Position numbers and translations under genes: made by a program | The notes under the pieces: model-generated | What the model was told of the DNA's origin: nothing | The model's database searches: none | What the model saw: only the letters and a program-made list of their open reading frames with translations | Part shown: piece after piece, positions 381-35,105 of the stretch | Position numbering within the stretch: position 1 is the stretch's first letter | Layout of the letters: every line of letters begins with the position of its first letter | Assembly: GCF_001194135.2 (NCBI RefSeq) | Contig: NC_068983.1 | Coordinates: 147,233,222-147,269,012, forward strand | DNA from: Octopus bimaculoides | Taxonomy: Eukaryota | Length of the DNA stretch: 35,791 bases | Reading direction: 5' to 3'

Positions 381-496
381 CATGTTAGTATTTAATTTAT
401 CTGGACTTTTGCTGCTTAAGTCTAAAATCTAATCTCTTATTATTGTTCAAAATGATAATCAACTTTTACTGCACAAAGCAGTTGAATTGAATAATA

Positions 497-1567
497 ATCA
501 ACTTTCGACACCTCCTTCTTTTTGCTTTTAGTCAAGGTTCTAAGGCCGCAAAAGCTGCTTGCGACATCTGTGTTGTGTATGGAGAGTTCAAAAAGTTCAA
601 AAATAGAAATTTTGACCTCAAAGACGCACCTCGTTCTGGCCGTCCAGTTGAGTTCGATGAAGTGCAATTAAATCAACATTTACACAAAAATTCTCCTCAA
701 ACAACAAGGGAACTGGCAGAGAAAATGGAATGCTCCCACACTGCTATAGAGAAGCATCTTCACTCGATGGAAAAGGTACAGAAGTATGGAGCATGGGTTC
801 CGCATGCTTTAAGTGACAACAACAACAAAAAATCAACGAGCCACAATCTCCGCTGGTTTGCTTGCTCGTCACCGTTCAGCTTATGGACACAAGCAACGAT
901 TTCTTTACCGAATCGTTTCTGGCGACGAAAAATGGTGCCTGTATATCAATATGAAGCAGCGTAAGGGATGGCTTAGCCCCGGTAAACAAGCGACACCGCG
1001 CGTGAAACAAGATCTTCATCCGCGTAAAATAATGTTGTGCGTATGATGGGACTGGGAAGGGATTACCCATTACGAATTGCTTGAAAGGAACCAAAAGGTC
1101 AACGCGGAAATCTATGTTCAACAGATGGAACGACTCAACACGGCTATTCAAGAGAAAAGACCTAATCGACAGCATGGAGTTCTTCTGCTGCACGACAACG
1201 CCCGCCCTCATATCGCCAATATGACCAAGGAAGCCATTCAAACGCATGGCTGGGATGTGCTGCCACACCCACCGTACTCTCCTGATTTGGCACCAGCGGA
1301 TTTCACCCTCTTTCGATCTCTTTCAAATGCTATGCGTGGAGTTTCGTTCAATACTGATACAGAATTGAGAGCTTGGTTGGATCAATTTTTCGAATCGAAA
1401 TCGGGTGATTTCTACCAACGAGGTATTGAAAATCTTGTTGAACGTTGGGAAGAAGTTGAAAACAATAAGGGTGAATACATTATTGAGTAATTAGTCATTT
1501 TTTTATTAAACCTTTTAAAAAATTAAAATTTAAAAAAACCCGCGGGAACTTAGTTGCCAACCCAATA
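497..1567 (+). mobile_element. Decayed mariner (DD34D, mauritiana-like), 5' TIR missing
   Basis: Transposase pieces in several frames: FRHLLLFAFSQG, DAPRSGRP, WVPHAL, GDEKW, HDNARPH, PPYSPDLAPADF. There are frameshifts and a TGA at W(W)DW. The 3' TIR ...acttagttgccaacccaa is followed by TA at 1566-1567. Confidence 0.92.
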
Positions 1568-3593: not shown

Positions 3594-3828
3594 ATGTCGT
3601 CAACATCAACTGTTAGTGAAGTAAAGATGAGAGATTGTGAAGAAATAAAAAAAGAAATAGAAAGTAATGCTGTACAATTCATCGGCAACGACGGAGAACC
3701 TATGCTAATTTATCAATATAAAGGGCACAATTTTCTTCGTATAGAAATGGCATCATCAGCTTTGTCCAAACTACATACAGTGAAAATTAGACCTGATGAT
3801 ATTTTGCTGTACACCCATCCTGGAGCAG
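3594..3828 (+). CDS. SULT-fold gene copy B, coding exon 1
   Basis: ATG at 3594; MSSTS...YQYKGHNF...KIRPDDILLYTHPGA-G; donor g|gtaag at 3828/3829 (phase 1). RPDD+PSB-loop position is typical of cytosolic SULTs. Confidence 0.9.
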
Positions 3829-4381: not shown

Positions 4382-4985
4382 TAAGGTTTTTAAACTTTTA
4401 AATTTTCATATTCAAAAGAGACAGAGACTTCAAATTCGATATATCNNNNNNNNNNNNNNNNNNNNNNNNNNNNNNNNNNNNNNNNNNNNNNNNNNNNNNN
4501 NNNNNNNNNNNNNNNNNNNNNNNNNNNNNNNNNNNNNNNNNNNNNNNNNNNNNNNNNNNNNNNNNNNNNNNNNNNNNNNNNNNNNNNNNNNNNNNNNNNN
4601 NNNNNNNNNNNNNNNNNNNNNNNNNNNNNNNNNNNNNNNNNNNNNNNNNNNNNNNNNNNNNNNNNNNNNNNNNNNNNNNNNNNNNNNNNNNNNNNNNNNN
4701 NNNNNNNNNNNNNNNNNNNNNNNNNNNNNNNNNNNNNNNNNNNNNNNNNNNNNNNNNNATATATATAATGTGTGTGTTTGTGTCAGTGTTTGTCCCCCAC
4801 CACTGCTTGACAGCCAGTGTAGTTTTGTTTACATCCCCGTAACATAACGGTTCGGCAAACTGAAACTGAAGGAATAAGTAACAGGCATTAAAAAAAATAA
4901 GCATTGAAATCGATTTATTCGACTAAAATTTCTTCAAGGTGGTGCTCCAGCATGGCCGCAGTCTACTGACTGAAACAGATAAAAG
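4177..4985 (+). mobile_element. tRNA-derived SINE with internal microsatellite, spanning an assembly gap
   Basis: Head has A/B-box-like gttaagaagcttgc...ggttcagtc. Middle is (TG)/(TA). The 3' part ...gcttgacagcc...cggttcggcaa...ttcaaggtggtgctccagcatggccgcagtc recurs at 27855-28100 and 31945-31990. Resembles SINEs I recall from octopus genomes. Confidence 0.7.
4446..4758. other. Assembly gap (N run)
   Basis: N bases. Confidence 1.
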
Positions 4986-5307
4986 ATTAAATATTCATAA
5001 AATGAAAAAAATGTTTATTTAATTTATGTGTGTAATCGTAAGTTTGCTATCCGGCCATTTTAATCCCTTGCTTACAGTTATAAAAGTTTGCAATATGTAT
5101 TTTACTGCTTCACACACACCGTAAGTAATCACGGTGAAGATTACTAGGAGTGTAGATTAAACAGATAGAATACCTGTCAGAAGCATTACCACGATTGAAA
5201 TAACATTGAGTAACCGTAGAGCAATAATTTTTCAACTGTGTACTAGTAATTATTTGTGGATATCATACTGGATATCTCACAGGAGAAATTTTCATTTATG
5301 GTTTCAG

Positions 5308-5625
5308 GTTCACATTGGATGTTTGAAGTCATTAATATGGTACTGAGAGAAAGCAGTGAAAGAATCAGCACGATAAAGGAATCGTTGCTATTAGACTGGG
5401 CACCAATAGAAATTCTCGAGTCAGCTGAATCACCTCGAGTATTGAACACACACCTTTCTATTGAATTCCTGCCTCCGGAATTGCTAAAAGATCATAAAAT
5501 CATCTATCTAAACCGCAACCCTAAAGCCATGGTGGTGTCGTACTACAGACACGTGAGTAGTTCTAAAGCTACTGAATACACAGGAGATTTTCCAAGCTTT
5601 TTTGACCTCTATATGAAAGGAAAAG
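5308..5625 (+). CDS. SULT-fold gene copy B, coding exon 2
   Basis: Acceptor gtttcag|gt; 318 nt; SHWMFEVINMV...SPRVLNTHL...KIIYLNRNPKAMVVSYYRH...FFDLYMKGK; donor g|gtaag. Contains the catalytic His (5451-5453) and the RNPK..S 3'-phosphate motif. Confidence 0.93.
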
Positions 5626-5631
5626 GTAAGG

Positions 5632-5651
5632 TTACCACCACCACCACCACC

Positions 5652-5740
<89 letters not shown>

Positions 5741-5830
5741 TGATGATGATGATGATGATGATGATGCTGATGATGATGATAATAATAATAATAATTATTA
5801 TTATTATCATTATTTTAACAATAATGATAA
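5632..5830. repeat. Compound trinucleotide microsatellite (CAC)(TAC)(AAT)(GAT)
   Basis: Direct reading; begins a few nt after the exon-2 donor. Confidence 0.97.
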
Positions 5831-5831
5831 T

Positions 5832-6460
5832 AAGGGATGCTGCAAGGGCTCATGCGGCTGTAAAGATCAGCTACTGGTCAATAAGGCCATAACTGAAGAC
5901 AACCGCAGAAACAAGAAGGGTCTAAGTATAGCCTGGATCGATTACCGAAAGGCTTTTGATAGTATTCCCCACACATGGATCCTAGAAACACCAGACAGTG
6001 CTACAGCTCCAGACAAAAGAGGGACTCATAAAAACCAAAGCCATCTCCATTAGAAGAGGAACGTTCCAGACAGATACGCTCGCTTCATTCCTTTTCTGCT
6101 TGGCACTGATATATGCTGAACAGAGTTGGATGTGGATACAACTGTTATGGCAAAAACTATCAGCCATCTATTATATATGGATGATCTAAAACTGTAAGTC
6201 AGAAATGATAAACAGCTGGAAATATTACTAGAGACAGTACATGGAATTATCGAAGAAATAAACATGAATTTTGGCTTAGAAAAATATGCCAAAGCAACCT
6301 TGAAAAAAGGAAAACTAGTTAAGAGTAGCAACATCACACTAGATAAAGCAAATGAAATAAGAGATTTAGACCAAAGCCAGACATACAAATACTTAGTAAA
6401 GAACTAAATACGATACAACGCACATAAATGAAAGAAGATAGAAAAAGGAATACTGTAGAC
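5832..6460 (+). mobile_element. R4/Dong-like LINE reverse-transcriptase fragment (decayed)
   Basis: KGCCKGSCGCKDQLL, WIDYRKAFDSIPH, ISIRRG.FQ.D, YMDDLKL motifs, with deletions, frameshifts and stops. Confidence 0.85.
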
Positions 6461-7189: not shown

Positions 7190-8132
7190 GTCATTCTGTC
7201 CGAAATTTGAATAAAGAGAACAAGTGATCAAATGTTATATTTAATTGAAATTTAATCATCAATGTACTTTCCTTGATTATATCTATGACTTCCTTCCATC
7301 TATTTACAAGCTTTTTAATCTCATCAATGTAAAACTCTTTTGGTCTCAAAGCGAAGAACTCTGAAATGTTAGTTTCGACTTCCTCCTGGCTTGCAAAAGT
7401 TATGCCCCCCAAATGATTCTGTAAACTACGAAACAAATGGTAGTCTGAAGGAGCAAGGTCGGGAGAATAAGGTGGATGAGGAATTTTTTCCCAACCAAGC
7501 TTTTCGATCTTCTGTGATGTGATCTTTGCAGCGTGGTGTCGCGCATTGTCCTGATGCAACATCACTCATTTTCAGTTCACTAAAGCGGGTCGTTTTTTCT
7601 TCAAAGCTTGGTTCAAACACTCTAATTGCTGACAGTAGACTTGAGCATTGAAGTTGTATGGTTTGAATTAAGCTTTATTGCCAATTCTTCAACTGATAAT
7701 GCAGGATTTTCTTCAAGTAATGCCCCAAGGAGCTTATCATCAAACTCAACTGGACGTCCTGTTTGATCTTCATCTTCAAGGTTGAAATCTCTACTTCTGG
7801 ATTTTGTAAACCATCCTCTGCAAGTTCTTACCTTCAAGCATTATTTCCCATAAACTGAGTATATGTTTCGAGTCGCTTCGGCTGCAGAGTTTCCATTTTT
7901 TGTACTCATAAAGCATTAAATGCCTTAAGTGCTCTTTGGATACTTCCATGTTAGAAAGGGTTTTAATCAAAGAATTTTCAGTTCTATTATTCTGTAAAAT
8001 AATATTTAATTAGTTTAAATGTACACAAATGCATAAAAATAATTTTTAATTCCATTAGACATTCTAAAATACTATTAGATTTCATTCAATTTAAAAAAAC
8101 GGTAAAATCGGACAGAACTTATGGAATGATCA
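7190..8132 (-). mobile_element. Internally deleted mariner
   Basis: Start MEVSKEHLRHLMLYEY at 7949; HQDNARHH and PPYSPDLAPSDYHLF are present. A deletion joins SNHTT to the YCQQL region and removes the first catalytic Asp. The right TIR is cggacagaacttatggaatga; the left TIR remnant gtcattc-tgtccga lacks 9 nt. Confidence 0.88.
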
Positions 8133-8881: not shown

Positions 8882-8979
8882 TTCCTTATGATGATTACTT
8901 TAAACATGTTCAGGAATTTTATGCCCTAATTAAAGATAATCCAAATGCACTTATCATTACTTATGAAGAAATGCAAAAG
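8882..8979 (+). CDS. SULT-fold gene copy B, coding exon 3
   Basis: tttttcag|tt; 98 nt; (V)PYDDYFKHVQEFY...IITYEEMQK|gtaat. Equivalent to the SULT V.YGSWF.HV..W and YEDM motifs. Confidence 0.92.
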
Positions 8980-9310: not shown

Positions 9311-9491
9311 GATCTATACAAAGTAGTGTTACATATTGCTAAGTTCCTTGATAAAACAATTTCTGACCAACTTGCTAAAAGTATTGTTGATATGTGTTCA
9401 TTCGATAAGATGAAATCTGAGAAAACATTGGTGTCTGCTTCGTGTGTCCCTAAAGACTTATTCAAAGAGGGTGGTACTTTCTACCATTCTG
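9311..9491 (+). CDS. SULT-fold gene copy B, coding exon 4
   Basis: ttcaacag|gat; 181 nt; DLYKVVLHIAKFLDK...CSFDKMKSEK...GGTFYHS-G|gtaag. Confidence 0.92.
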
Positions 9492-10468: not shown

Positions 10469-10575
10469 GTAAAGTGGATACATGGAAAAAATGGTTGACC
10501 GTTGAGCAAAGTGAACGAATTGATGCAAAGATCCAATCAGAATTCATTGATAAAGGAATCATATTCAATTTCTAA
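10469..10575 (+). CDS. SULT-fold gene copy B, coding exon 5
   Basis: ttttgcag|gt; GKVDTWKKWLTVEQSERIDAKIQSEFIDKGIIFNF*. The five exons sum to 235+318+98+181+107 = 939 nt, an uninterrupted 312-aa ORF. Confidence 0.93.
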
Positions 10576-11204: not shown

Positions 11205-11299
11205 TTGAAACGCATGGAATTTGAACTCAGAACGTAGCGGCAGACGAAATACAGTTAAACATTTCGTTTGGCGTGCTAACGTTTATGCCAGCTCACCGC
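11205..11299 (-). mobile_element. SINE head fragment (tRNA-like)
   Basis: Minus strand gcggtgagctggcataaacgttagcac...gttctgagttcaaattcc, with A-box and B-box-like segments. It abuts the truncated end of a mariner. Confidence 0.6.
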
Positions 11300-11948
11300 T
11301 GGAACGTTTACTCACCCAAATTGAATGTTGGGTTCACCACTTTGAGCCAGAGTCCAAACGGCAGTCCATGCAGTAGAAACACCCGTCTTCTTCTCCACCA
11401 AAGAAGGACAAGGTGGTGTCATCGATAGGGAAGGCGATGGTCTCCGTCTTCCGGGCATTGTGTTCATTGGCTACCTTCAGAAAGGCCATACTATCAATGG
11501 AGAATACTATACCAACTTGTGGAGGCAGCTGCGAAAGGTAGTCAAGTGAAAACGGCCTGGAAAAATGACGAAGGGTGTCCTGCTTCACCAGGGCAATGCC
11601 CTGCACGCAATTCTGTGGTAGCAATGGCTACTGTGTGTGATTGTGGCTTTGAATTCGTTGATCACCATCCATATTCTCCAGATTTGGTACCATCTGACTA
11701 TTTTCTGTTCCCTAACATGAAAAAACACTTGGCTGGGAAGCAATATCGGACCGATGATGAGGTCCTATCTGCTGTTGAGGAGCTTTTGAGTGTCAAGATG
11801 AGAACTTCTATACCATGGGAATCCAAACGCTGCAACACTGATGGAAGAAGTGTATAGACTGCATGGGCGACGATGTCGAAAAATAAAATACATTTGGTTA
11901 GACTATTGCATCGTGGTCAGCCTATGAACTTTTCAGCCAACCCTCGTA
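11299..11948 (+). mobile_element. 5'-truncated mariner (irritans-like)
   Basis: WVHHFEPESKRQSMQ, HQGNA, HHPYSPDLVPSDYFLFPNMKK motifs with frameshifts. The 3' TIR cagcctatgaacttttcagccaaccctcg is followed by TA. Confidence 0.88.
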
Positions 11949-13420: not shown

Positions 13421-13789
13421 TAACATTACATAAATGAAAGTCATTAATTGTAACTAACTCCGTTAAATTTTTTTTTTTTTTTTTGGAAAACTAATTCGGA
13501 AGAATTAATTCGACCTTATGGTTTTACTCGCATTTTTTTTTTTTTTTTTGTGATAAACAGGATTTTAGTCAATCATTCCAACACAAAGTATCTAGTTCAT
13601 AAAGTGACGTGGTTAAGGTGCTCAAAATTTACACCTTGTCTTGGATCGATGCTCGGCAGTTCTCAAGACTTGCTCGAGAGTTCTCAATTTTGGCTCTCTA
13701 TCAGTTTTATTGCTCAGATTTATGTTCCTATTTTCGATGAGTTATCTGTACTCATACTTTTTTTTAAATAAAATTATTTTATTAAAAGT

Positions 13790-16105
13790 GGTCACACAAG
13801 ATAATCGTTTTGAAGCATTTACTTAGTCATTCAATCTAGCCATCATATTTCTGCACAATCCTTAATTATTGCTGATTTCATTTTAATTTCTTTACACCTT
13901 GCAAGATTCTATATTGAAAAGACATATAAGGTGAACATTATCTTAAAGAATATTTTATAACTCAGACAGACGTGTAAGCACATAAATGATCTACTTATTG
14001 TAATTAAAGATGTATTACAAGAATATTATTAATATCTGTATGCACAGTAGATTAGAATTAATTTAAACATTGCAGCATTAAAATTTTACTTATGACGCAT
14101 AGTGCCATTCTAATATAAGAAGAGTTGCAGGTTATAAAGCAATTGAACACACACAACTATTAATGTGAATGTTCTTGATATTTTAATTTCATCAAATATA
14201 TCTATAGCCTAATATACAAACAATGAATAAGCACATCCCACAAATGTGTTAACAAGCTGAATATTGCATTTTAGTTAACTTGAGATCAACAATATGAAAG
14301 AAAAGAAATATATCTGAGATGACATAGACAAGAAAGCATAACGAACATGATATTGAATGCATAAGATATACTAAGGCAAAAAACTATTAACCACAGATAA
14401 ACACGAAGCAATACAGAAGTACTTAGTTGTGGTCGTTATAATAGTTCTTGTTCTTGCCCCAGACCTTTGATGCTAGTTTTCCAGCTGTGACTATGCTGTC
14501 TTGTCTTGTCAAGGATTATATATTTAGTATTGTATTATCCAATATATATTTCTCTTTTGTTATGATGGAGGATGTAATTTGTGGGAGATTTGACTGCTTT
14601 TTCTGATAGGTTAAGTAACGGCGTAGAATCTCTGCAATACTTCAGTCATTGGTTCTCGTCAGTGATTTAGAACATCACTCTACGCAGTAAATCTATCTCC
14701 TAAACTTTGCAGCCAAATATTCTTCAAAAAATATACTGTCACTTAAAAGGTGAAACGTGATATTGGATAACGCAATTCACGAGAAAATTTGAGTGTTAAA
14801 AGGTATGGACAAGAGTGGAACGTTTTAGTTCAGAGTTCTGCTTGATCACGTCTATCATATAATAAAATAAACAGCTGGTACTTTCGAACTTATGTGTTGT
14901 TCAGTCTCAAACTGGTGAGTAAGAGAACGAGTACTGGGTTGTAGAGTGAGAAAACTTCAAGGTAGAAGGCGAAAATTACATCAAGCGGCTGTGTTTGAAA
15001 CCGGAAAGCAACAAACTAGTTATGTCTCGACGTGGTATGTTGACAACTGTCATCGCTCAACTCTTAAATGCTACTGCTTGCCGACTACTGTTCGAAGTCA
15101 ATAGACGGCCTCATGAACCATGTGGAAGATATATAGAAACAAAATGAGTCGCTACTTCTTCAAATAATCCAAGTTACCTGTACTGACCAATGCTGGGTCG
15201 TATATTTACATGTAAACGCTACCTTTAAATTCTACATAAGTCTAATTTTTCATAAGTCTAATGATGAAGTCGTAACTTTGAGTAAAATAGAGCTGAGTTA
15301 AACTGTTACCAAATACTTATGAAATTCCAACTAAATGCATTAAGTGGGGTGGTATTTCTTGTTTAGTTTACTTTCACGTGTAAATGTGTATGGTATGTGT
15401 GTGTGTAAAATGGTGACTTTGCACAGTGGAAAGAAAACTTTCTGCTAAGAGGAATTAACACTAACTGATCTCAGATGTTTAGCTAAGAGGTATACACAAC
15501 TGGCCCCTGATCATGTATATACATATATACAACAAATATGCAACAGAAGTATAAAATATCCAGCTTAGTGCTGCATGACTGTTTTTCATGTTTAACTCGC
15601 ACACAGTAAAATATAGCCAAATTGATCCTTCCTACGATTTCTCTTAGAATGGCGGAATTTGAATGCTGAGCCTTAAATTACTTACCTTAATATTATAGGG
15701 TTTCTTTATCAGCATTGCATTACAATTGATTTACTTTTGCAAATGGTGAAATCATGAACGCACAATGGTTATCCTTCAATCATTGAAAAATTAGATTTAA
15801 TTAACATAAATTACTATCTCTGATCACCAAATACAAGAAACTCTTAGAACGCGAGAGAGATTCCCATTTATCCGTTTAAACATTTGTTTTTATAGCTAAG
15901 ATTGTATATAACATTTTAAGGTCACACTGGATGCTTGAAATCGCTAATATGATATTGAAAGAAAAGAGTTTCTTTGATAAAAGAAGACATGCTAACAGAT
16001 TGGGCACCAATTGAAAAGTTGAATTCCGTTGAGTCATCTCGATTCTTTACCACACACCTTCCAACGGAACTTTATGCAACCAGAATTGCTAAAGATCATA
16101 AAGTT
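13790..16105 (+). repeat. Paralogous block (intron 1 + start of exon 2) duplicated at about 28400-31480
   Basis: Collinear similarity, e.g. aatatgaaagaaaagaaatatat.tgagat (about 14290 vs 28951), tgtgggagatttg.ctgc, ggtgaaatcatgaacg, ttagatttaatta, and gctaagattgtatat. Confidence 0.88.
15920..16105 (+). pseudogene. SULT-fold copy C: orphan, disabled exon 2
   Basis: SHWMLEIANMIL..RVSLIKEDMLTDWAPIEKL..SSRFFTTHLP..KDHKV. The acceptor ttcag has become tttaa relative to copy D. There is an 8-nt deletion plus further indels, and the exon is truncated by a LINE. No exon 1 or exons 3-5 were found nearby. Confidence 0.88.
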
Positions 16106-17720
16106 ATGAGCATGGAATGGGTTGACTATCGCAACGCATACGATATAATACCATATTCCTGAAGAACAAGAACAATGGAAATGTATGGAATAGCAGAAAA
16201 TATGAGAAGTCATATGAAATAGCATGAATTGCTGGAGAACGAATTAACAGCAGGGAATCAAATATTAGGAGAGGTGAAAATCAAGGAAGGATATTCATGT
16301 TAGGAATGATCCCCTCGAGTGAAATACTACATAAAACAAAGTTGAGGTATGATCTGGGAAGAGGTAAGGGCAAACTGAACCACTTGCTGTTCATGGACGA
16401 CATGAAGCTATTCACAAAAAAACTTAGGTAGAACTGGACAGCCTAGTCCAGTCTGTGCTTATTTTCTCCAATGATATTAAGATGGAGTTTGGACTCTCAA
16501 AATGTGCTACGATGGTGATAAGACGAGGAAAACTTGCCAGGACAGACGGCATATGTATGTCAAGTGGTGAAATGATGAAGACAAGTGAACCTGAATTCGG
16601 TTAGAAATACCTGACTGAGAAACGTAGATGGAATTAAACACAATGATATGAAAAGAAAAAGACAAAGAAAAACTACCTACGGTGTTTGAGAAAAATCCTG
16701 GCTTCAAAGATGAATGCCAGAAACATAATTTCAGCTATAAACTTGCGAGTACTCGCAGTAATTCGGTATGGCGCTGAAATCCTGAAGTGAATAGAAGAGG
16801 AGCTAAAGGAATTAGACAAGAAGACAAGAAAGCTACCAACGATACATGGAACCCATCATCCACGTGCAGACATTGATCGCCTATACATGAAGAGAGTAAA
16901 TGGAGGAAGGGGACTAGTAAGTGTGGAAGGCTGCGTGCATATTGCACTCGAGAGTTTAATGAAATACCCAGCCCAAAGTGAGGAAACCAAGCTAGTGAAA
17001 GTTAAGAATAAGGGTGTATTGAGAGCAGAGAAAAAAGGGAAAGCAGAAGAAGTACGAAAAGGACATGAACAAGAATTACGCAAGAAGGAACTACACAATC
17101 TATTCCATGTAGCCACAACTGAAGATGCCGGCAAACATAGGTAGGATCACTGAAGAAAGGAACATTGAACAAAGAGACTGAGAGCACTATACTGGGCGCA
17201 CAAGACCAAGCTTTGACCAAGATTGGAGGGTCAACCTTTGGAATGAGCAAGTGTCTCCGATGTGCTATATCTATAATAGAGTGGACGAAATCATAGACCG
17301 GACTTAGTGGTGGTGGACAAGATGCACCACATGTGCTATATAGTTGATGTTGCATGCCCCTTTGACCCACTAATGTTCAAGAAAGAAGGCGAGACACTAG
17401 ATAAGTACCACCCTCTTATGTACGAAATAGCCTGGCTGTGAAAAATGAAGAAGGTGAACATAGTGCCAATCATTGTTGGGTCCTTGGCGACAATATTAGA
17501 AGGCATCATGAGGAATATACAGGAAATTGGAATAGAGTATCCAGTAGAACTGTTACAAAAGGTTTGCTTCCTTAACACGGCCAGAATAATCAGGAAAGTA
17601 TTAGATAGTTGAAAAGAACAGATAGCATGATACCGCAGGCTACAGGCAGCAAGCCCGCTACAAATGCAAAACTCCAGAAGTTCCAACAAAACCTGAAATA
17701 AAAATACAAATAGCAATAAT
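16106..17720 (+). mobile_element. 5'-truncated R4/Dong-like REL LINE
   Basis: WVDYRNAYD, HLLFMDDMKL, KMEFGLSKC, RPDLVVVD (REL), VDVACPFD, VPIIVGSL, ...RIIRKVLDS*. The 3'UTR ends in aataataattataat. Many stops and deletions. Confidence 0.88.
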
Positions 17721-17971: not shown

Positions 17972-18473
17972 NNNNNNNNNNNNNNNNNNNNNNNNNNNNN
18001 NNNNNNNNNNNNNNNNNNNNNNNNNNNNNNNNNNNNNNNNNNNNNNNNNNNNNNNNNNNNNNNNNNNNNNNNNNNNNNNNNNNNNNNNNNNNNNNNNNNN
18101 NNNNNNNNNNNNNNNNNNNNNNNNNNNNNNNNNNNNNNNNNNNNNNNNNNNNNNNNNNNNNNNNNNNNNNNNNNNNNNNNNNNNNNNNNNNNNNNNNNNN
18201 NNNNNNNNNNNNNNNNNNNNNNNNNNNNNNNNNNNNNNNNNNNNNNNNNNNNNNNNNNNNNNNNNNNNNNNNNNNNNNNNNNNNNNNNNNNNNNNNNNNN
18301 NNNNNNNNNNNNNNNNNNNNNNNNNNNNNNNNNNNNNNNNNNNNNNNNNNNNNNNNNNNNNNNNNNNNNNNNNNNNNNNNNNNNNNNNNNNNNNNNNNNN
18401 NNNNNNNNNNNNNNNNNNNNNNNNNNNNNNNNNNNNNNNNNNNNNNNNNNNNNNNNNNNNNNNNNNNNNNNNN
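17972..18473. other. Assembly gap flanked by (TA)n and (CA)n
   Basis: N bases. Confidence 1.
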
Positions 18474-20569: not shown

Positions 20570-21842
20570 CGAGGGGTGTATGAAAAGTCTTGAGCCTAAC
20601 CTAGAAACGGGGCTGCTAGGTAGCTGAAACAATTTTTTCTGGTTAGTACAGTCTTTTCGGGGTATTCTTGCTCATTTTCATGATTCTGATATTTTAAATT
20701 TTTTTTGCTGCAGATTTTTGAATAAACAAGTGTCGAGGTTACAATGAAAATGGAGAAAACTGAGTATCGTGCTGTCATAAAGTACCTTCATTTGAAAGGC
20801 ATGACTCCATCAGAAATCCATGAAAATATGGTGAGAACCTTAACAGACAATGCTCCTTTATATGCGACAATCAAACGCTGGGTAAATGAATTCCAGCGTG
20901 GCAGGGAGAGTGTGGAAGATGATCCCAGACCAGGGAGACCTCTAACTGCAACCACCGAGGACAACATTGACCTTGCTCTTGGTATGATAATGCAAGATCG
21001 TCGAATATCATGTCGTCAGATAGCCAAGAGATTGGACATTTCAACTGAAAGAGAAGACAACATTGTGACAAAAGAACTTGGATTCTCAAAAGTTTCTGCA
21101 AGGTGGGTCCCTCGCCTTTTGACTGAACAGAAACGTACCAGGTGCACTTTGTCCACGAGCAATCTGGAACTGTTTGAAGCCGATGAAGAGAATTTTCTGG
21201 CTCGTTTCATTGCTATGGATGAAAGTTGGGTTCATCACTACCAGCCTGAAACCAAAGAACAATTAAAGCAGTGGAAGCACACATCTCCTACTCCAAAGAA
21301 GGCCAGGGTCATTCCTTCAGCTGGCAAGGTCATGGCGTCAGTTCTTTAGGGTTCTCTAAGTGTCTTGCTGATAGATTACCTTGAAAAGGGTCACGCCATG
21401 ACAGGACTGTATTATTCTCAGCTACTGAAACGCCTCCAAGAAGCAATCAAAGAAAAAAGGCTGGGAATGCTCACCAGGGGAGTCCTTTTTAATCACGACA
21501 ATGCTCCAGCCCACACCTCAGTGGCTGCCATGGCAACATTCGTGATTGTGGATATGAACTTGTTCCCCATCCGCCTAATTCGCCAGACTTAGCTCCTTTG
21601 AATTTCATCTATACCCAAAATTGAAAAATGCCTTGGCTGGTCGCCATTTTGCCGTCATAGACGCTGTAGAAAGTTTCTTGGAATCTCAAACAAAAGAGTT
21701 CCTCTACGCCAGGATAATGGCGCTTCAGCACTGCTGGAGAAAGTGTTCAGCTATCGAGGAGGACTATGTTGAAAAATAAATCATCAGAAGTCTTGTACCG
21801 TGTTTTGTTTTTTGAGGCTCAAGACTTTTCATACACCCCTCT
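20570..21842 (+). mobile_element. Full-length mariner (irritans-like), transposase disrupted
   Basis: 28-bp TIRs: cgaggggtgtatgaaaagtcttgagcct (20570-20597) and 21815-21842, 27/28 match, TA on both sides. Transposase MEKTEYRAVIKY...WVPRLL...MDESWVHHY...HDNAPAH...SPDLAP. Stop at 21347-21349 plus frameshifts. Confidence 0.95.
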
Positions 21843-22648: not shown

Positions 22649-22859
22649 ATGGATAAAGAAATCAACCCTGAAGAAATAAAAAAAGAAATTGAAAGTAATT
22701 TTAAGCAATACTTCGGCAAAGATGGAGAACCTATATCTGTTTATCAATATAAAGGACACAATATTCTGCATCTCGACATGGCATCGTCAGCTTTATCGAA
22801 ACTACATACGGTGAAAATTAGACTTGATGATATTTTGATGCTTTCCTTTCCTGCAGCAG
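22649..22859 (+). CDS. SULT-fold gene copy D, coding exon 1
   Basis: ATG at 22649; EEIKKEIESN...YQYKGHN...MASSALSKLHTVKIRLDDILMLSFPAA-G; donor g|gtcag (phase 1), the same position as in copy B. Confidence 0.88.

Positions 22860-25509: not shown

Positions 25510-25510
<1 letters not shown>
25001..25510 (-). mobile_element. REL endonuclease 3' fragment flanked on both sides by (AAT)n-type tracts
   Basis: KILWDFNIQCDQVIEVRRPDIVI...KYQPLRDEI.KLW...IPVVTG.LGA...LLG...LRRVLSL*. Tracts at 24968-25001 and 25510-25585. Confidence 0.85.
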
Positions 25511-25585
<75 letters not shown>

Positions 25586-25589
25586 TAAA

Positions 25590-26764
25590 TAACGTGCTTT
25601 CACTTCACTACCGAGCGCAGCTCTGTGCGCCTTGGGTATGTGCTGTGGTTTGCTGTGGTGCTCTTATGTTTACTGTATTGAAAGTGTTTTGCGTAGAATG
25701 TGTGCCGTACCCAGTAGTGCANNNNNNNNNNNNNNNNNNNNNNNNNNNNNNNNNNNNNNNNNNNNNNNNNNNNNNNNNNNNNNNNNNNNNNNNNNNNNNN
25801 NNNNNNNNNNNNNNNNNNNNNNNNNNNNNNNNNNNNNNNNNNNNNNNNNNNNNNNNNNNNNNNNNNNNNNNNNNNNNNNNNNNNNNNNNNNNNNNNNNNN
25901 NNNNNNNNNNNNNNNNNNNNNNNNNNNNNNNNNNNNNNNNNNNNNNNNNNNNNNNNNNNNNNNNNNNNNNNNNNNNNNNNNNNNNNNNNNNNNNNNNNNN
26001 NNNNNNNNNNNNNNNNNNNNNNNNNNNNNNNNNNNNNNNNNNNNNNNNNNNNNNNNNNNNNNNNNNNNNNNNNNNNNNNNNNNNNNNNNNNNNNNNNNNN
26101 NNNNNNNNNNNNNNNNNNNNNNNNNNNNNNNNNNNNNNNNNNNNNNNNNNNNNNNNNNNNNNNNNNNNNNNNNNNNNNNNNNNNNNNNNNNNNNNNNNNN
26201 NNNNNNNNNNNNNNNNNNNNNNNNNNNNNNNNNNNNNNNNNNNNNNNNNNNNNNNNNNNNNNNNNNNNNNNNNNNNNNNNNNNNNNNNNNNNNNNNNNNN
26301 NNNNNNNNNNNNNNNNNNNNNNNNNNNNNNNNNNNNNNNNNNNNNNNNNNNNNNNNNNNNNNNNNNNNNNNNNNNNNNNNNNNNNNNNNNNNNNNNNNNN
26401 NNNNNNNNNNNNNNNNNNNNNNNNNNNNNNNNNNNNNNNNNNNNNNNNNNNNNNNNNNNNNNNNNNNNNNNNNNNNNNNNNNNNNNNNNNNNNNNNNNNN
26501 NNNNNNNNNNNNNNNNNNNNNNNNNNNNNNNNNNNNNNNNNNNNNNNNNNNNNNNNNNNNNNNNNNNNNNNNNNNNNNNNNNNNNNNNNNNNNNNNNNNN
26601 NNNNNNNNNNNNNNNNNNNNNNNNNNNNNNNNNNNNNNNNNNNNNNNNNNNNNNNNNNNNNNNNNNNNNNNNNNNNNNNNNNNNNNNNNNNNNNNNNNNN
26701 NNNNNNNNNNNNNNNNNGAGATAATATGATTTATTGTTTCTTGTCGATCTCCACATATTCTACA

Positions 26765-26765: not shown

Positions 26766-26823
<58 letters not shown>

Positions 26824-26835
26824 TATTACTATTAC

Positions 26836-26881
<46 letters not shown>

Positions 26882-26882
26882 T
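26766..26882. repeat. (TTA)n microsatellite
   Basis: Direct reading. Confidence 0.97.
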
Positions 26883-26994
26883 ACTTTGAATCTGGGGCGA
26901 GTGAAAGATGAGATGTTACACTTTGACTGAAAGCTTGGGGAGGGGAAATGGCAGGGGCAGTAGTGAAATATCTTCATGTAATACAACACAGACA

Positions 26995-27530: not shown

Positions 27531-27722
27531 GATTATTATTATTATTATTATTATTGGCAAACAGAACACAGTCGTGTGTCGATAAGCCAGCTGGAGGAGA
27601 TGTCCTCCTGGGGCTAAAAGCAACAGTAACATCCACCCCTAGGGGTCAGCCACACTTAAGTGGCAATATACTACACTTTATCGTGCAGTTACTGTTAATA
27701 CTTCATTTAGAGAATTAACATT

Positions 27723-27723
27723 G

Positions 27724-27763
<40 letters not shown>

Positions 27764-27787
27764 ATTATTATTATTATTATTATTAAA

Positions 27788-27835
<48 letters not shown>

Positions 27836-27852
27836 TACTACTACTACTACTA
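27723..27852. repeat. (TTA)n/(CTA)n microsatellite
   Basis: Direct reading. Confidence 0.95.
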
Positions 27853-27854
27853 TA

Positions 27855-28100
27855 TATATGTGTCAGTATATGTGCGCATTTGTGCGTGTATTTGCGTCAG
27901 TATTTGTCCTCCACCACTGCTTGACAAACTGTGTTGGTTTATGTTCTTGTAACATTAGTGTTTCGGCAAAAAATAACCGATAGAATAAGTACAATGACTC
28001 AAACACATAAATACTGGGGTCGTACGACTAAAATTCTTCAAGGTAGTGTCCCAGTATGGCCGCAGTATAATGACTGAATCATCTAAATGACAAAAGATAA
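27855..28100 (+). mobile_element. SINE 3' half (same family as 4177-4985)
   Basis: ccaccactgcttgaca...ttcggcaa...gaataagta...cgactaaaattcttcaagg...ggccgcagt matches 4795-4975. Confidence 0.72.
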
Positions 28101-31285: not shown

Positions 31286-31603
31286 GGTCACATTGGATGT
31301 TTGAAATTGTTAATATGATATTGACAGGAAACAGTGAAAGGGTTTCCTTGCTAAAAGAAGACATGTTATTAGATAGTGCACCTGCTGAACTACTTGATTC
31401 CACTAAATCACCTCGATTCTTGAACACGCATCTTCATCCTGAACTTCTGCCTCCAGAATTGCTAAAGGATCATAAAATTATCTTCCTCAACCGCAACCCA
31501 AAAGCTGTGCTGGTGTCGTCGTACAGACATACATTAAACGTTAATTTGTTGGACTACAAAGGAGATTTTCCAAGCTATTTTGATCTTTGGATAAAAGGAG
31601 AAG
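31286..31603 (+). CDS. SULT-fold gene copy D, coding exon 2
   Basis: ttcag|gg; 318 nt as in copy B; SHWMFEIVNMI...FLNTHLH...RNPKAVLVSSYRH...LWIKGE; donor g|gtaag. Confidence 0.93.
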
Positions 31604-32966: not shown

Positions 32967-33064
32967 TTCCTTATGGTGATTACTTTGAATACGTTCAGGA
33001 AATTTATGCTCTATGTAAAGATAACCCAAATGCACTTATCATAACTTACGAAGAAATGAAAGCA
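32967..33064 (+). CDS. SULT-fold gene copy D, coding exon 3
   Basis: tttcag|tt; 98 nt; (V)PYGDYFEYVQEIY...IITYEEMKA|gtaat; 26/33 aa identical to copy B exon 3. Confidence 0.92.
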
Positions 33065-33349: not shown

Positions 33350-33527
33350 GATATGTCCAAAGCAGTGTCACGTGTTGCTAAGTTCTTGGGGAAAACTATT
33401 TCAGACCAACTTACAGAGAGTATTGTTGATATGTGTTCATTTGATAAAATGAAATCTGAGAAAAATGTGACTAATTCGTTTTTAATCAAAGATCATTTCG
33501 TAGAAGGCGGTACTATCTACCATTCTG
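33350..33527 (+). CDS. SULT-fold gene copy D, coding exon 4 (exon 5 not in window)
   Basis: ttcaacag|gat; 178 nt, one codon shorter than B; DMSKAVSRVAKFLGK...CSFDKMKSEK...GGTIYHS-G|gtaat. Confidence 0.92.
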
Positions 33528-33565: not shown

Positions 33566-35105
33566 TAGGGTGCTTTTACGTGCCACCTGCAAAAAAACCA
33601 GTCCAGCGACACTGGCCACAACCTTGCTCGAATATTTTTTTACGTGCCACCGGCACAAGTGCCAGTAAGGCAACGCTGGTAACGATCATGCTCGAATGGT
33701 GCTTTTTACGTGCCACCAGTCAGCTGCTCGGATAGTGCTCTCAGCGCTCCCAATTTCGATTTCACTTGCCTCAACAGGTCTTCACATGCAGAGTTTAGTG
33801 TCCAATGAAGGAAAGGTACGCATAAGTGGGCTGGTTACACCACTGGCATAGGCCACGGGTTATGGTCTCACTTGGCTTGCCGAGTCTTCTCAAATACAGA
33901 GGTCTCGGTCACTAGTCATTGCCTCGGTGAGGCCCAATGTTCGAAGGTTGTGCTTCACCACCTCATTCCAGGTCTTCCTGGGTCTACCTCTTCCACAGGT
34001 ACCCTCAATCACTAGGGTGTGGCACTTTTTCACACAGCTATCCTTATCCATTCTCGCCACATGACCATACCAGTGCAGTCGTCTCTCTTACACATCACAT
34101 CTGATGCTTCTTAGGTCCAACTTTTCTCTCAAGGTACTTATACTCTGTCGAGTATGCACACTGACATTACACATCCAACAACTTGATATCTCTGTAATTG
34201 TTTGTATCTAAAGCATCACCTTTACCTTTATAGCAGTTGACTATAGTGCTGCTACACCAGTCATTGGGTATGACTCCGTGTGACAAGACCGATATTTTGA
34301 GCATCTTTGCAGTGATTCCTGATGGGCCGGAGGCTTTCCCTGTCTTAATACTCTTAATTGCTTTATCTACCAAGGTACTGTCAATTCGAATAGCTGTTGG
34401 GTCGACATTCAGCAGACTCTCTTTCTCCCATTCATTCTCTGTATTGAGTAACCTTTCATAGTGGCGTCTCCAGACCTCTCTCTTTGCAGCCTCGTTTAGT
34501 GCAAGTGAACCATCATCCATGCAGACACATTTCTCTCCAATAACATCACGATTCTCTCTCACACACTGTCTTGCAACATGAAATACCTCAAGTCTTTGGT
34601 CTTCATGGCGCAGAACATTGGCAAAATTTTACTTATCTGCTTCCCCTCCTAGCTTCCGTTCTGGCAGTCTGATACAATTCTCTGCTACCACCGTTCTTCC
34701 AGTACTTCCAAGCCTGTCTCTTTTCTCTAATAGCCCTGTCAACAACATTATTCCATCACCACGTTATTTTGGGTCTAGAGGGGACTTTGCACTATCCACA
34801 GATCTACTCATTGGCCCTCAGCAGGTTGTCCTGTAGAAACCTCCAGTTGTCTTCCACAGAGTATATCTCCTTCTATTTCGTCAAAGGCATCGAGTAATAC
34901 GTCTCTAAATCTCTGTCCATTCGCACGATCTTTAAACTTACAGACCCTTCTCCTCCATGCTGGTCGTCTTCTGGGCATCCATTTAGCCCTGATCCTGAAG
35001 TCGCTAACTACCAGTCATGTTGTGGGGTACATTCTTTGCCTGGGAAGGTTTTGGAATTTATAGGCAGCCATCTTTCTCTTTTTCTGGCGAGGATGTAGTC
35101 AACTA
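33566..35105 (-). mobile_element. RTE-clade LINE, 5'-truncated, RT core deleted
   Basis: End of the APE domain (VDYILARK), WWWNN, KGKGDA...NYR.IKLL, then directly the post-RT C-terminus (WYGHV.RM, RGRPRKTW). The 3' tail has repeated ttttacgtgccacc. Confidence 0.88.

Follow-up and report, generated by a model that had tools for sequence, protein, structure and literature searches.

The SULT1-type proteins encoded by an array of Octopus bimaculoides genes lack the lysine of the 5'-PSB loop (Lys48; human numbering is taken from the SULT1A3 alignment), and this absence goes back to a single loss in an ancestor, one of a series of steps, apparently under selection, that remodelled the cofactor site in an octopod-specific family. 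This account replaces the framing of the sequence-only reading of the same DNA, which had reported two different small residues in two paralogs: the residues, Gly and Ala, stand as described, whereas the tree gives one ancestral loss and not two events. Coupled changes in the 3'-phosphate motif, which that reading had missed, show that the anomaly is not confined to one residue and that the cofactor site has been remodelled.

The window (the whole stretch of DNA analysed, 35,791 nucleotides) belongs to O. bimaculoides chromosome CM046603.1 (assembly GCA_001194135.2), at ~147.23 Mb, and it is eukaryotic and AT-rich, with a heavy load of transposon debris. By self-comparison and tblastn, we found four SULT1-like genes, A, B, C, and D, in a head-to-tail array, all on the + strand. 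Gene B is complete with five exons, and exons 1-4 of gene D lie inside the window. The features are as follows:

101-208, + strand: gene A, last coding exon only (ending …GKVDTWKKWLTVEQSERMDARLQSELTERRIKFNF and the stop), found by tblastn with the gene B protein at 72% identity
3594-3828, + strand: gene B exon 1, donor G/GTAAGA, ending in phase 1 inside the PSB loop
5308-5625, + strand: gene B exon 2, with G-S-H-W, the catalytic His in NTHL, RNPKA…VS, and then the clade-specific Arg159
8882-8979, + strand: gene B exon 3 (VPYDDYFKHVQEFYALIKDNPNALIITYEEMQK)
9311-9491, + strand: gene B exon 4, whose terminal F-Y-H-S-G is the altered 3'-phosphate-binding motif (canonical F-x-R-K-G)
10469-10575, + strand: gene B exon 5, (G)KVDTWKKWLTVEQSE…, in which the KxxxTVxxxE dimer motif precedes the stop codon
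15907-16114, + strand: gene C, exon-2 relic, frameshifted by an 8-bp deletion and further 1-bp indels, ending after …DHKV at an inserted retroelement
22649-22859, + strand: gene D exon 1, ending L-S-F-P-A-A-G at the splice junction, the first of the two Ala codons at 22853-22855
31286-31603, + strand: gene D exon 2 (GSHW…NTHL…RNPKAVLVSSYRH…)
32967-33064, + strand: gene D exon 3
33350-33527, + strand: gene D exon 4, with terminal I-Y-H-S-G
38720-38826 in window-equivalent coordinates: gene D exon 5, ~2.9 kb past the window end

The remainder of gene A lies upstream of the window start, and its exon within the window matches the C-terminus of P0003 (O. bimaculoides XP_014790794). All introns of genes B and D are GT-AG with intact reading frames, and the exon models equal the RefSeq models exactly, the gene B product being 100% identical to P0001 ("sulfotransferase 1C4 [Octopus bimaculoides]") and the gene D product being P0006 ("sulfotransferase 1E1 [Octopus bimaculoides]"). 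In exon 2 of gene B, RNPKA…VS carries the equivalents of Arg130 and Ser138, and G-S-H-W closes the PSB loop. Gene B has two in-frame ATGs, at 3594 (the RefSeq start) and 3627, 33 nt apart, of which the upstream one adds MSSTSTVSEVK and is favoured because the O. sinensis orthologue has Lys at the second Met. No further exons of gene C were found in the window; ~2.4 kb of intron-1-like sequence homologous to intron 1 of gene D is retained there (context 13544-16160), and the retroelement that cuts the gene off has a reading frame starting …MEWVDYRNAYDIIP.

Four degenerate mariner/Mos1-type transposase remnants, at 491-1487 (+), 7194-7840 (-), 11209-11854 (+), and 20744-21621 (+), are situated between and inside the SULT genes, recognizable by Pfam HTH_48, Transposase_1, and DDE_3 and by the conserved PHPPYSPDLAP motif. 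Long trinucleotide microsatellites of the ACC/ACT/AAT type occupy 1821-1913, 5637-5833, 25510-25590, 26766-26883, and 27714-27860. The one at 5637-5833 begins 12 bp after the gene B exon 2 donor and is in frame, so that exon 2, if called from open reading frames only, would acquire a poly-Thr/Asn/Asp tail (ORF 5256-6053). Three assembly gaps (N runs, 1811 bases in total, at 4446-4758, 17972-18473, and 25722-26717) are flanked by dinucleotide repeats, and two of them fall in intron 1 of gene B and intron 1 of gene D, which are therefore not fully sequenced. A ~79% identical repeat pair was also noted 3' of gene A (2060-2427) and inside intron 4 of gene D (33691-34042); its minus-strand frame, …CGRGRPRK(S/T)W(D/N)EVVKH…, resembles a retrotransposon tail, and the adjoining minus-strand ORF at 34167-34562 had no Pfam match.

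At positions 3810-3828 of gene B, the letters TAC ACC CAT CCT GGA GCA G/gt encode Y-T-H-P-G-A-G, with the Lys48-equivalent codon GGA at 3822-3824 (Gly), and exon 1 of gene D ends TCC TTT CCT GCA GCA G/gt, with the Lys48-equivalent codon GCA at 22853-22855 (Ala). Exon 2 of gene B starts GT TCA CAT TGG, and the complete loops read Y-T-H-P-G-A-G-S-H-W in B and L-S-F-P-A-A-G-S-H-W in D. The Gly of B and the Ala of D align opposite the K of TYPK(A/S)GTTW in HMMER alignments to solved SULT structures. Direct reading of the window agrees with the sequence-only reading on the coordinates and codons, on the replacement of the preceding Tyr by His in B and by Phe in D, and on the first Thr, which is Ser because exon 2 continues G-S-H-W. 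It is also correct, as that reading stated, that neither GGA nor GCA is one substitution away from AAA or AAG and that A-to-I editing, which would yield GGG or GCG, cannot make a Lys codon. Sequencing or assembly error, already regarded as unlikely, is ruled out by the identical GGA and GCA codons in the independently assembled O. sinensis orthologues of B and D and by the motif in cDNA: an intronless RNA-seq contig of a paralogue (L003; SRR3401912, 1213 nt) has PGAGSHW, uninterrupted, where exon 1 joins exon 2. We also considered whether PK(S/A)G might be regained through a different first exon or splice junction, and rejected this, because the motif [YFHW]P[KR][STAC]G is absent from all six frames of the window and because the junction is the one used in the paralogue cDNA. 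A tblastn search of the window with eight canonical N-termini returned the known exons only.

The identity of the copies as SULT paralogues, likewise part of the original observation, is supported by the match of the gene B protein to Pfam Sulfotransfer_1 (PF00685) over residues 56-292 (E = 2.2e-51). In total, 44 solved SULTs match at E <= 1e-11, the best by sequence being SULT1C2 (2ad1, E = 5e-38). An AlphaFold2 model built with the clade alignment has a pLDDT of 88 and a pTM of 0.88, with confidence reduced only at the N-terminus and at residues ~250-280, including the altered 3'-PB motif; this latter segment corresponds to the flexible cap loop of canonical SULTs. The top Foldseek matches of the model are SULT1A3, SULT1B1, SULT1E1, and SULT1A1, with TM-scores of 0.75-0.87 (~0.8).

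We then compared the residues of the cofactor site in the octopod clade (21 sequences, of which 14 form the crown clade) with those in 191 non-octopod relatives. At position 48, whose survey across cephalopod SULT paralogs had been suggested together with the original observation, the Lys is absent from all 21 clade members, which have G, A, T, S, or Y there; of the 191 relatives, 189 have K or R (182 K, 7 R) and none has G, A, or T, and the crown has G in 10 sequences and A in 4. The changes extend to the 3'-phosphate motif. Position 257 is R in 187/191 relatives and H in 14/14 crown sequences, and position 258 is K in 186/191 relatives and S in 12/14 crown sequences. Position 262 is G in 182/191 relatives and D in 13/14 of the crown (G262D), and position 263, D in 183/191 relatives, is T throughout the crown (D263T, 14/14). 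Outside this motif, the Asp found at position 134 in 188/191 relatives is replaced by A in 12 and S in 2 of the 14 crown sequences (D134A). The canonical R257-K258-G259-x-x-G-D-W-K is thus read as H-S-G-K-V-D-T-W-K, the RKG becoming HSG, and only Gly259, Trp264, and Lys265 are kept. In addition, position 106, which is Lys in vertebrate SULTs and provides a second cation near the sulfuryl group, is Asn in the octopod clade.

The remainder of the site is largely constant. Pro47, Gly50, His52, Trp53, His108, Arg130, Pro132, Lys133, and Ser/Thr138 are kept in 21/21 clade members, as are Cys227, Phe229, Gly259, Trp264, Lys265, and the KxxxTVxxxE motif, with Asn131 (one Ser) and Tyr193 (one Phe) close to invariant. 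The catalytic base His108 corresponds to H127 in P0001 (invariant, 21/21), and Arg130 corresponds to R148 of the same protein (14/14 in the crown, where the Ser138 equivalent is S in 9 sequences and T in 5). The PSB loop backbone is retained in the gene B protein as P76, G79, H81, and W82, and in the dimer motif K284-K-W-L-T288-V289-E-Q-S-E293, the residues K284, T288, V289, and E293 are invariant. From these counts, it follows that the cationic phosphate clamps have been selectively removed, while the catalytic base and the other parts of the nucleotide site have been preserved. The crown has also fixed residues that are rare elsewhere, namely, in P0001 numbering, His276, Asp281, Thr282, Arg159, Lys285, and His141. 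Among these, Arg159 (SULT1A1 position 141) lies in helix alpha-6, one helical turn past Ser138; it is invariant in the crown and present in 4/7 stem members, with Asn or His in most other relatives, and it arises at the same node as the K258 loss. The Ser of mSULT2A8 equivalent to Ser138 sits between the PSB lysine and the 3'-phosphate (PMC8134075). At the sequence level, Arg159 is the best candidate for a compensating cation, and it may reach the vacated site.

The absence of the lysine is concentrated in octopods. All 19 octopod matches to gene B, which come from O. bimaculoides, O. sinensis, O. vulgaris, and Argonauta hians, either lack the Lys or are fragments missing the loop, and the next-best matches after the octopods are from the gastropod Elysia and read PKAGTHW. 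Among the best 150 SULT relatives, essentially only octopods lack K/R at position 48. The search with the clade profile was exhaustive over 1.84 billion representative proteins. No canonical K48-bearing octopus SULT was present among the named matches, in searches that were not exhaustive for that question. A firefly-squid SULT from another subfamily keeps both the Lys and the RKG, and cephalopods as a group therefore possess canonical SULTs.

In a neighbor-joining tree, the octopod clade is monophyletic with 96% bootstrap support and its crown group with 100%. Its members form a ladder with respect to the two motifs. The lowest rung is P0030, annotated "SULT1B1-like" and located on another chromosome, which has PASG and an intact RKG and whose Argonauta and Octopus sequences share at least 90% identity. 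The next is P0026 (PYSG and RTG), followed by P0022, P0017, and P0024 (PT(A/S)G and RSG) and by the crown expansion (P(G/A)(A/T)G and HSG), which includes genes A, B, and D. The tree indicates a single loss of Lys48, at the root of the octopod clade, and it makes K48 the first residue lost, K258 the second, and R257, replaced by His, the third. Two independent losses of the lysine are rejected by the same tree, and the Gly of B versus the Ala of D represents later drift at an unconstrained site, since GGA and GCA are one base apart. Two RNA-seq relatives of P0030, 71% and 67% identical to it, also lack the Lys (PASG and PSSG), and one of the two occurs in at least 20 runs. In the gene represented by P0030, P0182, and P0183 (loci L007-L017), only Lys48 is missing (PASG or PSSG) and RKG is kept; this P0030-type gene is abundantly transcribed, with identical contigs in at least 20 RNA-seq runs.

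Because the substitutions are common to at least 21 proteins in four octopod species, they predate the species splits. The order and orientation of genes A, B, and D are shared with O. sinensis (i.e., the array is syntenic), and all five exons, the phases, and the splice sites of B and D are intact in both species. By the Nei-Gojobori method, dN/dS between paralogues is 0.24-0.46 (dS 0.38-0.93), in all cases significantly below 1, and the D orthologues of O. bimaculoides and O. sinensis give 0.54 (p = 0.017); for the B orthologues, the value is 0.68 and not significantly below 1 (p = 0.12). Intronless RNA-seq contigs, i.e., cDNA, represent the clade members P0008, P0182, and P0183, and exact-match transcript look-ups for B and D returned genome records only. 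Taken together, the substitution patterns suggest that the family is fast-evolving and selected (moderate purifying selection), not decaying.

It is therefore very improbable that B and/or D are young unitary pseudogenes, or genes being lost, in which the missing Lys merely reflects neutral decay, although several observations are of the kind that such decay would leave: the dN/dS of the B orthologues is not significantly below 1, remnants of transposons abound in the introns, the array sheds copies (gene C is frameshifted and transposon-truncated), and there is no exact-match transcript contig for B or D. Against decay are the substitutions that 21 or more proteins share across O. bimaculoides, O. 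sinensis, O. vulgaris, and Argonauta hians, the exons, phases, and splice sites intact in two species, the paralogue dN/dS and the significantly constrained D orthologues, and dozens of invariant positions, newly fixed ones included. Pseudogene status of B and D is thus largely rejected on the basis of the intact frames and introns and of dN/dS, and the true relic in the array is gene C.

As to what these proteins do, we give about even credence to the explanation that B and D encode functional proteins of the SULT fold whose canonical PAPS-dependent transfer is weak or absent and which act mainly by binding a ligand or nucleotide. B and D belong to an octopod-specific, tandemly expanded SULT1-type branch in which the positive clamp for the cofactor phosphates was dismantled stepwise, with D134A, G262D, and D263T accompanying the K48, K258, and R257 losses in the crown that holds both genes. 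The proteins would adopt the usual dimeric SULT fold and could probably still accommodate an adenine nucleotide as well as a small ligand resembling an acceptor. Of the two 3'-phosphate clamps, one would be missing, as would the cation by which the departing PAP is stabilised, and canonical sulfuryl transfer would for this reason be poor or nil. Their main role, by analogy with SULT4A1, might be that of ligand-binding or regulatory "pseudo-sulfotransferases". Judged from the alignments and the predicted model, residues essential in active relatives are replaced (Lys48 and Arg257/Lys258 are changed) and the fold is retained, which is the pattern by which pseudoenzymes are recognized. Mutants of other SULTs support the key role that the sequence-only reading had ascribed to the replaced 5'-PSB-loop lysine. 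In canonical SULTs, this Lys touches the bridging oxygen of PAPS. AtSOT18 K93A has no detectable activity; at pH 5.5, mSULT2A8 K44A loses 70-90% of its activity, and at pH 7.5 none is detectable (PMC8134075). Furthermore, the side chain of AtSOT18 Arg313, the equivalent of R257, binds the 3'-phosphate.

Several features nevertheless sit uneasily with a pseudo-sulfotransferase. An invariant His108, together with the remaining cofactor contacts (21/21), would be unexpected in a pure non-catalytic binder, and the basal P0030, which appears essentially canonical save for Lys48 and has at least 90% Argonauta-Octopus identity, would fit a working enzyme. His52 is present, and by analogy with mSULT2A8, in which the equivalent His48 is catalytic and K44A keeps 10-30% of the activity at acid pH, it could contribute to catalysis. 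Arg159 may fill the vacated cation position, and the dN/dS of 0.68 (p = 0.12) for the gene B orthologues also counts against this role. A rewired but active sulfotransferase, working on PAPS or a related donor such as APS with other residues replacing Lys48, is accordingly a real possibility, though one that we hold clearly below even. Arg159 and/or a protonated His52 would take the place of Lys48, and His276 and Lys279 that of Arg257/Lys258. Such an enzyme would account for the clade-wide retention of His108, Arg130, Ser/Thr138, Trp53, Phe229, Tyr193 (one Phe), Cys227, and Gly259, for the new invariant residues R159, H276, D281, T282, and K285 that adjoin the site, and for the very strong conservation of the basal K48-less gene, and mSULT2A8 shows that catalytic roles can shift within the SULT scaffold (PMC8134075). 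Moreover, AtSOT18 Lys314, the equivalent of K258, touches the 3'-phosphate via its main chain only, so that K258S need not hurt. By contrast, no natural SULT1-type enzyme without Lys/Arg48 was encountered among the 191 relatives or in the literature searched, every test of an Ala at this Lys has shown a severe effect, and Lys106, the other cation, is Asn here. The more specific proposal that the clade consists of competent transferases, using PAPS or another donor, that stabilise the leaving group without the PSB-loop lysine, via Arg159 and/or His52, is rather doubtful. If true, it would represent a previously unknown catalytic architecture in the SULT fold, with a stepwise origin followed by an octopus radiation. 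Less probable still, and unlikely on present evidence, is new chemistry on the SULT fold via His108, whether of a dehydratase type, hydrolytic, or a transfer from a non-PAPS donor. It would be in keeping with the retention of the catalytic His and the acceptor side while the donor-phosphate clamps alone were changed, coordinately, and then conserved, and the SULT fold does host a non-transferase, retinol dehydratase, which is among the structural matches. However, retinol dehydratase uses PAPS and was solved with bound PAP, and since it still uses PAPS it offers no precedent for the loss of the lysine; nor is there positive evidence for any alternative donor or reaction.

The octopod proteins share with canonical SULT1-type enzymes (SULT1C2, 2AD1; SULT1A3, 1CJM/2A3R; SULT1B1, 3CKL; and the molluscan SULT1-like proteins) the same Pfam domain and fold (TM ~0.8), a length of ~300 aa, the KTVE dimer motif, and His108, Arg130, Ser138, Trp53, Phe229, and Gly259, and most molluscan relatives also have, like the octopod clade, His at position 52 and Asn at position 106. 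They differ in the replacement of Lys48 by Gly/Ala, RKG by HSG, GDW by DTW, and RNPKD by RNPKA, each of which occurs in at most 2% of the 191 relatives. A closer functional analogy for the preferred explanation of a mainly ligand- or nucleotide-binding protein may be vertebrate SULT4A1, the orphan brain SULT (PDB 1ZD1), which we regard as the best one available: it combines a conserved SULT fold with minor alterations of the PAP site, one of which removes the Lys that separates Arg from Gly in the RKG loop (PMC1847840). Human SULT4A1 is conserved, does not bind PAP, has no detected activity, and binds catecholamines (PMC1847840), and the absence of PAP binding is attributed to one or two changes in that same loop. 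The resemblance is incomplete. In SULT4A1, the adenine-stacking Trp53 is Leu and the loop is shortened, whereas the octopod proteins keep Trp53 and the loop register; conversely, the loss of the PSB-loop lysine in octopods is not among the SULT4A1 differences given in that paper (PMC1847840).

A precedent for a relocated catalytic residue is mouse SULT2A8, a 7alpha-hydroxy bile-acid sulfotransferase (PDB 7EOV), in which the canonical His is Leu and the PSB-loop His equivalent to position 52 serves as the catalytic base (PMC8134075). Position 52 is likewise His in every member of the octopod clade, but in SULT2A8 the PSB lysine and the RK of the 3'-PB loop are still present, whereas the octopod proteins have the canonical His and not the lysine. 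SULT4A1 also differs in its mode of evolution, being single-copy and slowly evolving, in contrast to the fast-evolving tandem family of octopods. Tandem expansion of a detoxification-enzyme family is also seen in the S-crystallins of cephalopods, GST-derived lens proteins of which some members are catalytically dead and serve a non-enzymatic role. The S-crystallins, however, have a different fold and belong to a different family, and there is no evidence for a structural or lens role of the SULT-like genes.

The literature searched contained no description of SULTs without the PSB lysine or of this octopus family, and no biochemical data on these octopod proteins were found in it. Genes B and D have been annotated automatically as ordinary sulfotransferases (1C4 and 1E1), and an optic-gland transcriptome paper gives "sulfotransferase 1C2" as a steroid-sulfating enzyme in O. 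bimaculoides. Caution is warranted here: octopus "sulfotransferase" transcripts, such as the optic-gland SULT1C2-like one, a possible member of this clade, should not be taken as evidence for steroid sulfation. The PSB-loop lysine and RKG are treated as defining, invariant features of PAPS-dependent sulfotransferases and underlie the annotation of genes B and D as 1C4 and 1E1. Their ordered loss in at least 21 octopod proteins, in which selection has apparently maintained the catalytic His and the other parts of the nucleotide site from a time earlier than the Argonauta/Octopus divergence, amounts to a natural experiment on which cofactor contacts are dispensable. Either outcome would be useful: the family may prove to be an invertebrate counterpart of SULT4A1 in the form of an expanding non-catalytic family, or it may hold a new catalytic solution within the SULT fold.
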